Shown piece after piece: positions 1-34,222 of a stretch of DNA of 43,619 nt (the first letter of the stretch is position 1; every line of letters starts with the position of its first letter). The notes under the pieces are model-generated. The model was not told the DNA's origin. It made no database searches and saw nothing but the letters and a program-made list of their open reading frames with translations. The translations under genes and the position numbers were made by a program. Source of the DNA: Salpingoeca rosetta (taxonomy: Eukaryota > Protista > Choanoflagellata); NCBI GenBank assembly GCA_033442325.1, contig JAWQFM010000007.1:529968-573586 (forward strand), in the 5' to 3' direction.

Positions 1-2010
1 ATCACCCCGGGCTCAGCCCCGTTGCCGACAACCCGCACCGTCCCCGCGCGCAAGCGTCCGCAGCCGAACCTCCCGTCCAACCCCAAGCTCCATCCGCGTC
101 AGGTCCTCAAACACAGCGCTCACAAACACAGACGCCCGCTGGCCCTCAAAGTCAAGCACGTCCCGCTCAACCACAACAGTCGCCTCCGCGCTCGACCCAG
201 GGTCATTGCCAAGCTCGCTCATGCCGCCGCTCACGCGCACCGCGCTCGCAACAACAACGTCCAGCCCAACAATCCCAACGTAGCTGTCCTGCGCCTCAAG
301 CATCGCCTCGCCGATAACGCGGGACCCGCTCACCGCGGCGCTCAATACGCGCACCACCGTCTGCCCAGCGCCAACGCCCTGCACGTGCCCAGACACAACA
401 GGGTCAACCCGTGCCACGCTCTGGTTCACAACCGCAAGCTGCGACTGCCCCAGCAGCCCGCCCAGGCTCAGCGCTGCGCTCACAGCGTCCCCGCTCCGGA
501 ACCGCCCAACAACGCTCACGCGCGCCCGCTGGAACTGGCTTGTCCCCAGCGACACGCACCCGTCAGACGCATCGTGCCCAGCGTCGCGCTGCCACCGCGC
601 CACCCGCCGCACAACGTCCCGGTCAAGCACTACCTGCACCGGCTCCTCAGGGTACCACACGCGCACCCACACCCGCGCGGACTGCCCGCCATACTCAACG
701 CTCACGCCCACAGACGGCGACCCGCCGCTCTCGGCGCCCGTCACGCGCACGCGCCCGCAGTCAGCATCCGCCAGCAACACGCTCGTGTTCAGGCTCATGC
801 ACGCCAGCCCAGGGCTCCCCGCAGACACAACTGCAAACTGCCCAGGCCGCCAGCTGCTCACAGCACGCACAGAGAGCGCAGACGTCTCCTCGCTCCCGCT
901 CAGCACAGCCGTGTTCACAAGCTCAGCGCGCGCCGCGCTCGCAACAAGCCCAACCACTCGCTCAGGCTCCACAACAACAAATCCGTTGCCGTCACGCGCA
1001 AGCCCGTCGGTAGACCCGTAAGCCCCGCCTCGCCGCACAATCACAGTTGCAGGCTCCGCTCCGCCGCCAACAAGCAGCGGCCGCCGGTCAATGTCGCTCA
1101 GGTACACAGCCCGCACAGACACAAGCGGCTGCACTGCAGCGCTCGTCCCCGCGCCGTCCCGTACCCGCACCACAACCGTCGCAACCGCCTGCTCCTCCGT
1201 TTGTGCATCCTGCGACGCTGTCTTCGGGTCCCTCAGAATGTAGCTCCCAGTCGCGTTCCGCCCATCAGCCGTCACGCCGTACTGGCCCGTCCACACATCC
1301 TCGTCAACCTCAAACCGCACAAGCTCAAGCTCGGGCCCAACAAACAGGCTCGTGCGGAACGTGTTGATCGCACGCTCCGCCTGCACACTGAGTGACACCT
1401 CAAACTCGTCGCCGCTCTTCAGTGATGCCTGCGGCACCCGCGCAATCAGCAAGCCGTTGCTTCCGCTCGGGTCAAACGCGCTCTCGGGCCGCACCAGCAG
1501 CACCTCAGACACGCGCCCCGCGTCCTGGAACCCAGCCGTCAGCGCATACTCCACGCTCACATTCAGCGCGCCGCTGCCGTCGTCCCCGCCGCCGTTCTGG
1601 CTCGCATCAACCGCCGCAGCGTCAGTCACCCACGCCTCAGGCACATCCACAGACGCAATGCACGCGCCCGTCCCGCTGTCCGTGCTGCACGTTCCACTCG
1701 GCATGCTCGTGTCAACCTCCTGCTGCAGCGTCGCCCCGCCAACAAGCCGCACATGCACCGTCGTGCTGCTCGTCCGCGTGCTCCCGCGCGCATCCCGCAC
1801 CTGCACCGCAACGTACACCCTCCGCGAGTCCGGCCACACCTCCCCGGTCAGCAGCTGCGCCTCAACGCTGCTCGCTCCAGCGCGCCCGCGCGAGTACCCC
1901 AGCGATGCAGACAGCGACGCAGCCATCGCGCCAGCGCCCTCGCCCTGGTCAAGCTCAACAGAAACAGACGTGCTCCCGCCAGGCGCCAGGCCCGCTGGGA
2001 AGCCATATCG
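1..2010. repeat. Copy 2 (partial) of a 4938-bp intragenic tandem repeat; near-identical to 4940-6948
   Basis: The same ORF translations recur at offset 4938 (411/5349, 785/5723, 1047/5985). The only differences noticed are a synonymous SNP at 1393/6331 and a 1-nt insertion near 46. Confidence 0.95.
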
Positions 2011-28166: not shown

Positions 28167-31100
28167 ATGTCCGACCTCAAGGACGCCCAAGCAAATCAAG
28201 CCTCGTCCGCATCAGGACAGCAGCAGCAGCTGTCCGCAGCTGGGCCAACCAACGGCAACGCAGCCATGCACGGCACACCCAGCCTGGTCCCACACATCCC
28301 GTTCCTGCTTCCCTCAATGCAGCAGCCACTGTTTCCTTTGGTTCAGCAGCAACAGCAGCAGCAGCAGCCGGCAACGGCCGCAGGAATGCCGCGAAGCACC
28401 ACGCAGACCACATTGCCCGCAATGCTGCAGCGGACAACCTGGGCGGCTACCACGCAGCAAGCGCCAGTGCCCCTCCAACCAACATCCACGTCCGCACCCA
28501 CGTCCGCATCTCACCCTGCCACTGCTGGCGATGCCGAGCCGCCAGCCAAGAAAGCCAGAAGAGTTAGGAAGCACGGCCAGTCTGGTGCGCGTGCGGGCTC
28601 CGAGTCGTCTTCAACACAAGGGTCAACGTCATCGGCCGCTTCCTCGTCGAGTTCCTCGTCCTCCAGCTCCTCCAGGCCTGCATCCACACGAAAGGCTGCA
28701 GGTGGCTCGGCGCCCAACGCCAACAAGAGCAGGAAAGGCAAGAAGGACACCAAGGACAAGAAGGACAAGAAGGACAAGAAGGACAAGAAGGAAGATGCCC
28801 CTACAGGCGCAAACCCGAAGGACGGCAAGCGGAGCTCCCCCTCAGCCTCACCAAAGCCACAAGCCAAGCAGCCGAGAGGTAGCGCCAGCAACAAGAAGAG
28901 CAAGCCAGCCGATGCAAGCCGCCCCCGCGACACGGACAGCACACCCCGAAAAGCGAGCAGTTCCTCTACGCAGCGACGCTCATCATCTGCAGACAAGAAG
29001 AAGTCGCCACGAACTGCATCGCAGACCATACCAGCACCAGCATCAGCATCGAAGGCACGAGCCTCCTCCTCCTCCTCCTCGTTGTCAGCGGCATCTTCAT
29101 CGTCGTCGGTGGCGGCATCCTCCTCCAAGCGACGCCGCAGCTCCGCCGCCGCCGCTGCTGCTGCCACGAGTGGCGGTGGTGCTCGGGTCACATCCACCAC
29201 GAGTACGTCAAATGGCACGGCCAGAGCGAGCGATGACGATGGCCAAGACCTGCCACTGCAGTTCGTGGCGCTGCGCTGTGTCAAGGAGCAGCTCCCACCA
29301 ATCTTGCAGCCGCACTTTCTGGAGAACATTGACATGCGCAACCCAAGCAGCTCCATCGAGGAGATGCAGATGATGTACTGTTTCGTGACGTTCATTGCGG
29401 ACGACACCATTGCGGCCTTTGAGCAGAGCACGAGCAAGCGCGCAGACATCACCGACGCAGTCAACCGCCTGCGTCAAGTTGCAAGAAAGACGCTTGAGGG
29501 GCGTGCGCATATGAACCGCGCCACCATCGAGGCCCTGCTTCGCTTCAATGCCGAGATGATTGACATGCCCGTCGTTGCCGACGCGAACGAGCTTGATGAG
29601 GCGACCATGAAGAGCGTCAGCAGCGACACAGCCATCTTCGTCATGAACCCGTGCGGCGTGCTGTTCCGCGCCAGCGACATTGCCGTGGACGAGGAGGACC
29701 CCGACCTCAATGACGACACGGCCGTGGGCGCGCTCTCACCGCCGCACATTGGCGACGACCCCGACCTCGACACGGCCGTCGGAGCCATGCACGGCAGTAC
29801 CCCCGAGCAGCACGGCTTTGCTGGCAAATTCACGGAGCCGATTCATGACCTGCAGGTGATTCCCACGTCCCCGGTCGACCAGCAGCAGGCGGGCACCAGC
29901 GCCCCCAACATCTACCCGCACCAGCAGGCCGTGGGCGCCAGCGTGTTTGACCACATCCGCACCACGCTGCTGGCCTTGGAGCTGGACATTGAGAGAGACA
30001 GCATCGATGCGGCTGCGCGACTGCCGTTTGATGAGCTTGGCGGCATCCTCATGTTGGTGCCCAACTTCAACTCCCTGTACGCGCAGACGCGCTCGCGTGC
30101 ACAACAGTTCCTGCGGCAGCAAGGCGTTCCCGAAGACAGGGTGTTGGTGGTGAAGTGCAACATGACCATGACAGAGGAAGTCACCGCCTTCTGGCGGGCA
30201 GTGGAGACGAACAGGAACAAGTTGTTTGTGGTGCTGCACGACGAAGCGCACTGGGCCATCGACAAGTCCCCCGCTGACGACAGCCCGAGTGGTGTTGCTG
30301 ACCTGTTCCTCAACCAACCCAGAAACGACAGGGTTAAGGATGCGCCCAACCTTGTCCGCTTGCTGGTCACAGCCACGCCCTATGCCTTGCAGACCCAGAT
30401 CTCCAGGATTCACTTTGCAAACGAGATCCACTGGGATGCCGTCACGCGCGGCAGCGAAGAGTCGTCTGGTGAGAATGTGTTGTGTGTGTGTGTGTGCGTG
30501 TGTGCGTATTTGTTTGTGTTGGTATGTGTATTTGTGTGTGTAATTGTGTGTGTGTGTGTGTGTGTGCGTGTGTCTATCCCTGTAGGTGTGATTGCAGCAG
30601 CTTGTCAATCAGTTTCAGTTCTCACCAATTGATCAACCACACACACACAAATACGCCCACACACTCACACGAACACAAACACACACACACACGCACACAC
30701 AACAGAGAACCACGGGCCGCGATACTTTGGACTGCTTGACCTGCAGGCACATCTGGAGGACACGTCGGACCGGCAGCGAATCATTGTGGATGCGCCATTT
30801 GCGGACATGGTGTCCGACTACGTTGGGCGTCGCAGCAAAACCGCGCGCGAACAGCTGATTGCCACGTTCTTCGAGTGCTACGAGGCGGCCTTTCTCCTGG
30901 CCCTCAACGACCTCGCGCGCAACCACATCCCCAACAGAGAGCAGCTGGAGAGCCGCACAACGAAAGTGACGCACAACATGATCACCCGCTTCCTCAGGGC
31001 GACGACCAGCACCAACGGCCATGGACACATGCTCCTCATCCGCGTTGTCAACAACCGAATGGGCCGCGTGTTGACGGAGCGGCTAAGAGAGCTTCGCGCC

Positions 31101-34100
31101 AAGCTTGGCCTTGACAAGCGGTTTGCGGTACTGCAGGACACCAGCGCCGACCCACTGCGACGCGTGCTTGAACTTGATGAGCGCAGCTCCGAGTGCCTCT
31201 CGCGGCTGCAACAGATGACGGGCGCAAGCGACATTGCCAGCTATGAGCAGCTGGAGCACCTCCCATGCATCCTTGTGCTCTGCGACAAGGGCCGCATGGG
31301 CGACACCTTCCCCAAGTCGCTGCAGTACTACGACCTCCGCCTGCGGTACGGTAGCTCCTCCACGCGCTCCTACATGGAACAGGATCTCGGACGCATGTTC
31401 CGGTACGCGCGCAGTCTGGACGAGCTTCCCCTATGTCTGTTGCCGCCAACGGCACACGAGTGCCTCCAGCGAAGCCTCACACACCTCTCCCCTGACGCCA
31501 AGGTGTGTGCGTGTGATCCTGTGAATGTGTGTGATCATGTGTGAGTGCGCGTGTGTGAGTGTGTGCGTGTGTGTGATCATGTGTGAGTGCGCGCGCGTGA
31601 ATGTATGTGTGTGTGCGTGCGCGCGTGATCAATTATGTGTTCCCTACTGCTTCCATCCCGCCTTCATCTTGCATGGACAAACATGACTTCTTCTCACTCA
31701 CCATCTGTCTCACTTCTCACTCTCCCTTGACTTGGTACTTCCAGGTGCGCATGGCGCGTGAGCGTGGCGATGTGCAACTGCCCCGGCCAAAACCGAACGA
31801 GACGCTGACCCAGCGTGACGCGCGCTACTACCGCAGGTTTGCTCGCCCAACAAGCAAGAACTACGACGAAGGCAACCGCCGGGGTGCAGACCCACGCCGC
31901 TTCCTCCTGCAGGGCAAGCCGCAGGTGGGGAAGACGGGCGCGTACCTGTGGGCGCTCAAGCTGCTCGCTGAGCACCTCAACACAACAGCAGCACCCGTGG
32001 AGACGGAGGAGGTGGTGGTGTGCTGTGACGACGACGACTTTGATGATGAAGGAAACGAGCGGTTCCCTGCTATGGACGAGGATGAGCAGCAGCAGCAAAA
32101 CCACCGCGGCGTGCTGCCTGTGCACACGGTGGTGCAATCCCTGCCCTTTGTGGCGCCACAGCCCGGCAAGTATGGCGCCATCATCATGGACCAGCGTGTG
32201 CACGCAGCGCGGCTGGCAGCAGCAGAGGCAGCGGCACACGGCGACAATGGCGACGTTGTTGTGGATGGTGCACCCGGGAACCGGTCACGACTCGTGGTGC
32301 GCAAGACTGTGAGCAGCGAGTATGCGCTCATGGCGCGACCACAGCCGCCGTCAGCTCAGGCGGCAGCAGGCGACAGCGCTGTCGTGGCCGAGTTTGCGCC
32401 GCCGGTCGTGGCTGAGCTGAGCGTGAACAGCGACAACGAGATCAACCGTGAGAGGACGCTGGGCAGCCGATGGCACATTCCCGCAGCCAAGGCGGGCCTG
32501 TTCCAAGGGCTCACCAGCCGTGACAACAACGGCACCGCTGCTGCGTTTGAGCGCATTCGTGTTGAGGACCTTGACATGCCCGTCGTGTTTATGCCATCGA
32601 GTGGGCGTGCCGCCATCGGCCTCCTCGACCTCAGCAGAACACTCCGCAGTCGTCAGAGCAATAGCAGCGGGAACAGCAGCACAAGCAGCAGTGACAACAA
32701 CGGCGGTGGCGACGGTGGTGTTAGTGCGCTGCAGGTGATTGTGGTGAAACAGGGCGAGTTTGACGCCTATTGCAAGCACTACCCCGACGTGGTGGTGTGT
32801 GCGCTGCCAGAGGCTGCAAGCAGCCCTGACAAGGGCATTGGTGCGAGCCGCGACTTCATCAAGCGGTTTGCCACGCTCAACCTCGACCTGACCCGCCACG
32901 CAGCGCTTGCTGGCGGTGTGAGGCTGGGGCGGGTTGCGAGCCTCATCCTCATGCTGGACGACTCGTGCTTGGTGTTCAAGCGTGCCGTCGTGAAGCAGGA
33001 TCCCTGCGACTTTCACACTGCTGATGATGTTGATGTTGTGGACGGCGCCCAGCATGGCGGTGCGAGCGACGATCACCAGCGAGAGTGGAGGTGGGACTGG
33101 GCGAACCGTGAGAGCCGCAGTGAGTTCACCATGGAGGACGTGCCGCTGCTGCACGTGCTGCAGCACATGCTGAGCGACCCTGAGCTGCACAGGTACGCGC
33201 TGATGGGCATTTCGCGCTGGCATCCATTCTTGCGCAACATGCAGAGCGCGTACAAGCGGTCGCACGTGTACTCCTTCCAGCTGCTGAACGTGGACCTGAC
33301 ACGCGACGTGCACTACGAGCCGGGCGATCTGCTGTTTGAGGACATCCGGTTCAACGAGCGGATGTACGCGCGGGATCTGCTGTTTGTCAAGTACTGTCGC
33401 TTCTTGGTGATGAAGAAGCAGCTGGCTGAGGGCGGCTGCAGCGCCCTGCTGGAGGAGGCGCAGGCGGATGCGCAGAAGCCGACGCACGAGCGCAGGTTTG
33501 AGGTGACCGTCCCTCCTCCCTCAAGCAACGATGGTGCACCGGCACGCGATGACGGTGCAGACGGTGCGATGTTTCCTGTCACCGTTCCTGCCATCCCGAC
33601 AGCTGAGCTCGTCGCTGCCGTTGGGGGCAACGCAGGTGACTTGCTGGAGCGGTTGCGGGATGCGCTTCGCACGGTGTTGCATTCCGATCTCATGCCACTG
33701 CTGAAGCTGGAGCTGGTTGAGCCCCGCATGCTGTGTGCGCCGCCAAGCACATCGCCCCGCCCCCACCGCGTGCTGTGTCGGGTGTGTCTGAAGGAGGCTG
33801 GCCAACCGCTGACGGTGGAGGGCTTTGAGCAGCTTGAGGCGGCGCTTCCTCACGTTGCTGTCCACGCGTGCGCGCGGCCGTCTGCACCCCTGGCGACCGT
33901 GCTGCGGTTTATGCAGCTTCACCTGGGCGCATTGCCCGCTGGTGCGCAGGTGGTCACGCTCGGCGAGAAGCCAGCACGTGACGCAAGCGTGGACACCGTT
34001 ACCGACGGCATTGAGCACGCCAGCGTCGTGGCGTCGTACACGGCGCACCCGGTTGCCATGCGAGGGCTGGCAAGCAACGCTGACTTCCGGGTCATTCTCT

Positions 34101-34222
34101 TTGACATGCACAATGCCAGGGACGTGCGCGGGCTCAACTCGCTCGTGACCAATGCAGGCCCGAATGTGCAGTCAAGTTACTACTTCCACTTGGGCTGGGT
34201 CGTGGTCATGCAGCGCACATAA
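28167..34222 (+). CDS. GREB1: GREB1-like protein (~1858 aa): low-complexity N-terminus with NLS, permuted SF2 helicase, C-terminal TAGT/JGT-like GT-A glycosyltransferase
   Basis: Exons 28167-30468, 30706-31502, 31745-34222 (5577 nt, in phase). RRFLLQGKPQVGKTGAYLWAL resembles GREB1 RRLLLSGPPQIGKTGAYL. GT region: VFMPSSGRA..VIVVKQGEFDAY..HYPD..LP..GIGASRDFIK..LMLDDS..SHVYSFQLLNVDLT..Y....FEDIRFN. Helicase motifs: HDEAHW, TATP, KGRMGDTFP, EQDLGRMFRY. Confidence 0.85.

Follow-up and report, generated by a model that had tools for sequence, protein, structure and literature searches.

A GREB1-like gene of the choanoflagellate Salpingoeca rosetta encodes a circularly permuted SF2 helicase domain with intact catalytic motifs

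The GREB1-like locus and its paralog

We analyzed a 43,619-nucleotide stretch of DNA from the choanoflagellate Salpingoeca rosetta (the window, by which we mean this stretch at its full length), which is GC-rich and eukaryotic and was studied against a genome assembly (G000) of 68 contigs and 55.4 Mb. Between 27.7 and 34.2 kb of the window three long plus-strand open reading frames (ORFs) lie in two frames, and these, combined with a splice model, give a GREB1-like coding region of three exons (28167..34222, plus strand) for a protein of 1858 amino acids, with no in-frame stop across its 1858 codons. Behind a disordered N-terminus, the protein unites a circularly permuted superfamily 2 (SF2) helicase domain, cpSF2-GREB1, with a TAGT-type glycosyltransferase domain. 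On the strength of its K/R-rich N-terminus alone, it is predicted to be nuclear. An earlier reading of the nucleotide sequence (henceforth the original prediction) had picked out seven helicase motifs here and proposed that they belong to a potentially active, ancestral form of the GREB1 helicase. The features of the gene are as follows, with motifs Ia, III, V and VI read from the translation and the family alignment and motif I read from the translation:

28167..30468, plus strand: exon 1, with the start ATG at 28167; low-complexity N-terminus rich in S, K and Q, a conserved region and the N-terminal part of cpSF2
29910..29933, plus strand: Q-like motif IYPHQQAV, the conserved glutamine being Q586
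30054..30089, plus strand: motif Ia, LVPNFNSLYAQT
30237..30254, plus strand: motif II (Walker B), HDEAHW, with D692, E693 and H695
30369..30380, plus strand: motif III, TATP
30469..30705, plus strand: intron 1, GT..AG, phase 1, GT/CA microsatellite
30706..31502, plus strand: exon 2, the RecA2 half of cpSF2 with motifs V and VI (PF20692, E = 5.1e-38)
31287..31313, plus strand: motif V, KGRMGDTFP
31377..31406, plus strand: motif VI, EQDLGRMFRY
31503..31744, plus strand: intron 2, GT..AG, phase 0, 242 nt
31745..34222, plus strand: exon 3, with a linker, the relocated strand-P-loop-helix unit, TAGT and a C-terminal region, the stop lying at 34222
31895..31987, plus strand: relocated beta1-Walker A-alpha1 unit, PRRFLLQGKPQVGKTGAYLWALKLLAEHL, with K1096 and T1097
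31904..31936, plus strand: motif I (P-loop), LLQGKPQVGKT
32516..33445, plus strand: TAGT-type glycosyltransferase domain, the best Pfam stretch being 32717-32974

The portion of cpSF2 in exon 1 holds the Q-like, Ia, II and III motifs, and the motif blocks as a whole are spread over three exons and two reading frames, a circumstance absent from the original prediction. The ORFs that bear them are parted by two GT/CA microsatellite stretches with canonical GT..AG ends. Stranded RNA-seq reads over the gene have the orientation expected of a plus-strand transcript, and the joint across intron 2 (242 nt, GT..AG) is present in raw RNA reads of X18 and in RNA contigs of X4 and X8. At intron 1 the RNA joints are discarded by read mapping owing to the repeat, and support there comes from depth and a contig end: none of the four runs shows any RNA depth over 30500-30699, and an RNA contig terminates exactly at 30468, where exon 1 ends. 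The public model of a paralogous protein has homologous junctions at both introns, joining SEESS to ENHGPRYFG at intron 1 and SPDRK to ANISKPPKG at intron 2, and the C-termini of the two proteins are colinear as far as the stop codon.

This paralog is a second full copy on contig 15 (G000:C15:1353189-1357412), corresponding to Salpingoeca rosetta PTSG_06081 (P0001) and displaying 75-81% identity to the window gene; it was also the best of 337 matches, at 81% identity, in an exhaustive search with exon 2. The two genes have three exons, both intron positions and the catalytic motifs in common, whereas PTSG_06081 differs in its locus, in its diverged low-complexity N-terminus and in its annotated length of 1908 amino acids as against 1858. 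It is also expressed, RNA reads of X19 containing a spliced junction. Across the domain (561 aligned codons) the rates of non-synonymous (dN) and synonymous (dS) substitution between the copies are 0.13 and 0.44 respectively, giving a dN/dS of 0.30 that falls to 0.06-0.15 around motifs V and VI; judged from these codon comparisons, both paralogs are under purifying selection.

Several minor observations attend the two copies and their transcripts. Both introns of the window gene (30469-30705 and 31503-31744) consist almost wholly of GT/CA microsatellite, as do the homologous introns of the paralog. The dS between the copies varies along the domain from 0.18 to 0.84, which may reflect patches of gene conversion. 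RNA depth spikes at 28700-28899 of the window, on a repeat coding for KKDKKDKKDKK where joints of the type "goes back 21-30" and many loose ends also accumulate; this pile-up is probably due to cross-mapping from other transcripts with K/D repeats or to variation in repeat length. Between 29312 and 33185 the RNA departs from the window at dozens of sites, in nearly all reads of X19 and most of those of X18; the cause could be a difference in strain, or reads of the paralog that map here where patches of the two copies are conserved.

Domain architecture and motif conservation across the family

The three exon pieces of the domain match the Pfam cpSF2-GREB1 profile (PF20692) with E values of 1.1e-31, 5.1e-38 and 1.1e-12 and bit scores of 110.6, 131.6 and 47.9, against a curated cut-off of 26.2 bits. 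These matches are colinear, covering profile positions 39-176, 237-431 and 646-705 of 716, and a genome-wide scan with the same profile gave 249 bits at the window locus. Because the profile matches all three exon pieces, the motif set cannot be regarded as a chance assemblage. Downstream of cpSF2 the TAGT profile (PF20691, cut-off 27.5 bits) is matched at 71.1 bits (E = 1.6e-19), and this glycosyltransferase piece aligns to members of the family. Pfam thus bears out the assignment to the GREB1-like family by recognizing both cpSF2 and TAGT. GREB1_N (PF15782), GREB1_2nd (PF20688) and GREB1_C (PF20267), which Pfam detects in bowfin GREB1, were found neither in the N-terminal 578 amino acids of the window protein, nor in exon 3, nor in the paralog, and for this reason we class the protein as GREB1-like rather than as GREB1.

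The cpSF2 prediction itself reportedly goes back to Iyer et al. in 2013, and the Pfam description of PF20692 reads "Circularly permuted SF2 helicase found in GREB1 proteins". The permutation is a curated feature of the whole family and no peculiarity of this gene. GREB1-like proteins have likewise been listed for Choanoflagellatea (PMC7968844), such that the permutation, the fusion to TAGT and the presence in choanoflagellates are all already published or curated.

Each of the seven motifs that the original prediction had placed could be translated from the window at its given position, in the order Q-like, Ia, DEAH, TAT, V, VI and P-loop. A regular-expression search over the spliced protein returned a single [AG]xxxxGK[ST], at residue 1090, and a single DExH, at residue 692. 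Walker A is absent by this search between the Q-like motif and Ia, and the sole copy lies after RecA2, just as had been proposed. The Q-like motif follows a pattern conserved across the family, h-[YH]-P-x-Q-x-x-V-A, whose first part, h-[YH]-P-x-Q, resembles the LRPYQ type of SF2 proteins. The aspartate and histidine of motif II are conserved in at least 90% of alignment A1, and R997 and R1000 of motif VI are candidate arginine fingers. Conventional SF2 proteins, such as HsdR of EcoR124I, Snf2h/Sth1, RadD, Prp2 and RIG-I, share the two-RecA-domain fold and the chemistry of the motifs with the window protein, the difference being that Walker A there comes after the N-terminal Q motif and here after motif VI. 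The recognizable catalytic motifs are intact in the translation and the family alignment, and this extends to all the motifs needed for ATP binding, hydrolysis and coupling.

For the wider family the window protein was matched to family representatives in four pieces (N, M, C and GT), with motifs counted among representatives at 50% identity in columns taken from phmmer-anchored alignments. The N-M-C-GT order is kept in all but two (P0010 and P0011) of the representatives in which all three helicase pieces were matched, and across the representatives compared the position of Walker A after RecA2 is family-wide. Motif II reads D[ED][ACSGT]H in 55 of 63 representatives, motif III reads [ST]AT in 58 of 67 and motif VI reads Q..GR in 94 of 98, while the glutamine, glycine, lysine and threonine of the P-loop are invariant in 37/37 sequences of the domain alignment. 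Nearly all non-deuterostome members, along with the window protein, keep motifs II, III, V and VI; they are intact in Capsaspora, the annelids Owenia and Paralvinella, Cyanophora, Guillardia and Hondaea. The proteins of Capsaspora owczarzaki (CAOG_01586 / CAOG_009446; P0157, P0016), which like S. rosetta is a unicellular holozoan with a GREB1-like protein bearing TAGT, read QDEAHW, TAT, KGKMGDTFP, QDLGR and GRPQVGKTG; they are only ~30% identical to the window protein and are annotated merely as hypothetical protein.

The exceptions at motifs II and III are all named GREB1 or GREB1L by their source, save one unnamed lamprey protein, and come from hagfish, lamprey, bowfin, stickleback, Paramormyrops, peafowl, Saccoglossus, a crinoid and a sea urchin. 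Deuterostome GREB1/GREB1L, as exemplified by bowfin GREB1 (P0084) and stickleback GREB1L (P0043), resemble the window protein in combining cpSF2-GREB1 with TAGT, in their motif order, in an invariant GxPQ[IV]GKTG loop and in ~30% identity over the helicase domain. They differ in having GREB1_N, GREB1_2nd and GREB1_C, none of which Pfam finds in the S. rosetta proteins, and in their motifs: motif II is D[NQH][AS]H without the glutamate, motif III is SCF, TSF or TPT, motif V is GKDPLGE and motif VI has lost its first arginine (QE.GL), with GPPQVGKTG retained. The original prediction had described the helicase motifs as apparently eroded in vertebrates. This stands for the DEAH glutamate, SAT/TAT, motif V and the motif VI arginine, which are lost in the deuterostome GREB1/GREB1L lineage, and does not stand for the GKT loop, which is kept; from the alignments, then, the erosion is one of hydrolysis and coupling motifs and not of Walker A.

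In a maximum-likelihood tree of the domain the eroded GREB1/GREB1L form one clade (Shimodaira-Hasegawa-like approximate likelihood ratio support, SH-aLRT, of 100) requiring one change, and a single loss suffices since they do so. The S. rosetta pair falls in a larger clade with Capsaspora, which also takes in deuterostome GREB1/GREB1L. Given that the eroded motifs are confined to one deuterostome clade and that nearly all other members are intact, the sequence comparison indicates that the intact state is ancestral, as had been suggested for the window protein, and that the erosion is derived in the deuterostome GREB1/GREB1L lineage.

A second cpSF2 subfamily (P0087, P0202, P0203, P0089, P0108 and P0011) was also apparent, in which A....GKT replaces G....GKT and motif II is often DECH. 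Its representatives from annelids, Cyanophora, Guillardia and Hondaea have intact motifs, and some of its members are proteins of 2400-4800 amino acids with extra domains, which the source names give as ZZ-type in one and caspase p20 in another. A search of viral contigs recovered no cpSF2 relatives. Bacterial and archaeal genome contigs yielded two weak matches, both in contigs of metagenome-assembled genomes filed as bacterial (L009 and L010), where cpSF2 exons with motif VI and then the P-loop lie on ORF-poor DNA. One of these contigs is 1.2 kb long, and the other is almost devoid of long ORFs and carries a sequence of the annelid-type subfamily; we read both as probable eukaryotic contamination and reject a bacterial cpSF2.

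Predicted structure of the permuted ATP site

An AlphaFold2 (AF2) model was built on the paralog domain (P0001:625-1201, ~80% identical and with identical motifs) from an alignment of 37 rows, and it has a mean predicted local distance difference test (pLDDT) of 85.3 and a predicted TM-score (pTM) of 0.88. Within this compact model the RFLLQ-GKPQVGKT-helix unit is itself of high confidence (strand 522-526, helix 533-549, pLDDT 91-96), which would not be expected of a detached segment. The top Foldseek matches of the model are HsdR of EcoR124I, Snf2h, Sth1, RapA and MDA5, with a probability of 1.00 to HsdR and Snf2, while VIA-align gives Z scores of 12-13 over 290-345 residues to Prp2, RadD, Dbp5, RIG-I and FANCM. 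By both comparisons the domain has the two-RecA-domain SF2 fold, and it carries motifs Q, I, Ia, II, III, V and VI. Save for FANCM (12..564), the VIA-align alignments stop at about model residue 519, directly before the relocated strand, which is as a permutation predicts.

The window protein was addressed through docking of its own pieces, namely an N piece with the Q, Ia, II and III motifs (29877-30467) and a P-loop piece (31850-32017). The two docked with an interface score (ipSAE) of 0.78, as against 0.56 for the best of three controls; the mark applied is reached by 51/78 solved complexes and 2/108 mismatched pairs, or among eukaryotes by 39/65 solved and 2/126 unrelated pairs. Runs agreed in at least 75% of contacts, with a partner pLDDT of at least 61. 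The lowest-error contacts are those of F1086-L1088 with R731-V734, the strand that runs into TAT of motif III; in canonical RecA topology strand 1 neighbors the motif III strand. The interface also takes in residues 686, 688, 690 and 692 of the DEAH strand, including D692, and the helix that begins at the Q-like motif packs against the P-loop helix in the docking model. The original prediction had raised the question whether the GKT strand completes RecA1 next to DEAH and would have been undone by a model with the GKT loop far from it. The docking instead places the P-loop piece by the DEAH and motif III strands, in line with a completion of RecA1.

These results suggest a path for the chain. 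It would begin with the Q-motif helix, pass directly into strand 2 with motif Ia, and then form the remainder of RecA1 (DEAH, TAT) followed by the whole of RecA2 (motifs V and VI). The strand still wanting at the center would come only about 85 residues further on, together with the Walker A loop GKPQVGKT and the helix after it. In the predicted arrangement this strand enters the sheet between its edge and the motif III strand, by the DEAH strand and under the Q-motif helix, and its insertion would recreate an ordinary SF2 ATP site.

Function of the helicase domain

We consider it probable that this expressed three-exon gene encodes a permuted SF2 core that works as an NTPase or translocase in the service of the fused glycosyltransferase. 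Such activity is what we infer from the motifs and models, and on this footing the most likely role of the domain is that of a functional NTPase or nucleic-acid translocase by which the substrate is positioned or exposed for the glycosyltransferase: it would hydrolyze ATP and move along or remodel nucleic acid, so that TAGT could act. Enzymes of the same TAGT family (PF20691) include the kinetoplastid base-J glucosyltransferase and phage enzymes, which add sugars to 5-hydroxymethylated cytosine or thymine in DNA (PMC7968844). A base-J-like DNA substrate is without support here. The enzymes that make hydroxymethylated bases are of the TET/JBP hydroxylase type, and a scan of the whole genome (G000) with Tet_JBP (PF12851) gave no match, with the limit that the control genomes gave none either.

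This last result is one of several that weigh against a working motor. Motifs Ib and IV were not identified in the domain, and a profile of the domain run against PDB sequences gave no significant helicase match, its P-loop matches being at chance level. The AF2 model is of the paralog and not of the window protein; the docking was run with ESMFold2, on fragments taken from one chain and without alignments, and had a partner pLDDT of just 61-64, with one control reaching 0.56. The human GREB1 helicase domain, which is circularly permuted, has been described as catalytically inactive (PMC7968844), and deuterostome GREB1 couples an invariant P-loop with the loss of DEAH.

The main rival to the motor is a nucleotide-dependent switch, in which the domain binds nucleotide, perhaps hydrolyzing it slowly, and serves as a conformational switch or scaffold for the glycosyltransferase instead of as a processive translocase or helicase. 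The P-loop is the only motif invariant across the family, including the deuterostomes without the DEAH glutamate and the motif VI arginine, and its retention there without DEAH means that the conserved role may be nucleotide binding alone. Human GREB1, in which an inactive helicase domain accompanies protein O-GlcNAc transferase activity (it O-GlcNAcylates a protein; PMC7968844), and the Tet_JBP scan just described, uninformative controls included, would also sit well with a switch. However, motifs Ia, III and V, which couple ATP to nucleic acid, are conserved outside deuterostomes like the motifs of the ATP site, and the nearest folds are those of translocases and helicases; we therefore hold the switch to be unlikely for the S. 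rosetta protein, if more credible than the other alternatives.

Among these is the possibility that the GKT loop lies outside the helicase core, as a separate small nucleotide-binding element or as part of the glycosyltransferase side, leaving RecA1 incomplete and inactive. The loop does come ~85 residues past motif VI, in another exon and with low-complexity sequence after it, but no second Walker B follows it, the Pfam cpSF2 profile takes in its segment, its pLDDT is 91-96 in a model of pTM 0.88, and it docks specifically to the motif III and DEAH strands and the Q-motif helix (0.78 vs 0.56 for the best control). RecA1, moreover, would otherwise want its central strand, which the RecA fold includes. 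A separate module is on these grounds very improbable, and we reject it. It is harder still to credit that the gene is an annotation artefact, be it a decaying duplicate or a set of ORFs never joined in one mRNA. A genomic stop codon and a change of frame between the motif blocks, and the near-copy on contig 15, might have pointed that way, yet both introns begin and end canonically (GT..AG), RNA contains the joint across intron 2, the public model of the paralog shares the junctions, and the 1858 codons are open with a dN/dS of 0.30 between the copies. A pseudogene or artefact was rejected accordingly.

Going beyond the motor itself, we raise tentatively, and as a proposition more doubtful than not, that the GREB1-like proteins of S. 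rosetta work as motors on nucleic acid or chromatin, driven by ATP and built around the permuted SF2 core, and deliver TAGT to its target. Animal GREB1 would then descend from a motor-coupled glycosylation machine in which the motor was lost once, upon the gain of GREB1_N, GREB1_2nd and GREB1_C and a shift to protein O-GlcNAcylation. If this were true, choanoflagellates may possess a glycosylated mark on nucleic acid or chromatin that is produced without TET/JBP.

GREB1 and GREB1L have been linked in the literature to hormone-dependent cancers and hearing loss, and their biochemical mechanism is still poorly understood, an inactive helicase domain having been described for the human protein. 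S. rosetta, for which transfection and knockout methods have been published, expresses two copies of a motif-complete version, and these offer a direct means of probing the original function of motor and glycosyltransferase and their substrate. The description of the deuterostome proteins is sharpened as well: their ATP-binding loop is kept and the hydrolysis and coupling motifs are lost, apparently in a single event. With the family, its permutation and its choanoflagellate presence published or curated, the gain is modest; what the present analysis adds is the gene model of this copy, the motif-by-motif comparison of the family, with its single deuterostome loss and retained P-loop, and in silico support for the insertion of the strand.

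Two further features of the S. rosetta genome touch on the domain complement of these proteins. A third, weak TAGT-like stretch (G000:C26:263399-263785; 23.6 bits, under the Pfam cut-off) sits within a 3831-amino-acid open frame that has no cpSF2 domain. Upstream of the helicase domain of the window protein, amino acids 355-570 (window 29229-29876, DLPLQFVALRCVKEQLPPILQPHF...) form a region for which a Pfam search of amino acids 1-578 gave no match; this region is kept between both paralogs and occupies the place of GREB1_N and GREB1_2nd in animal GREB1.

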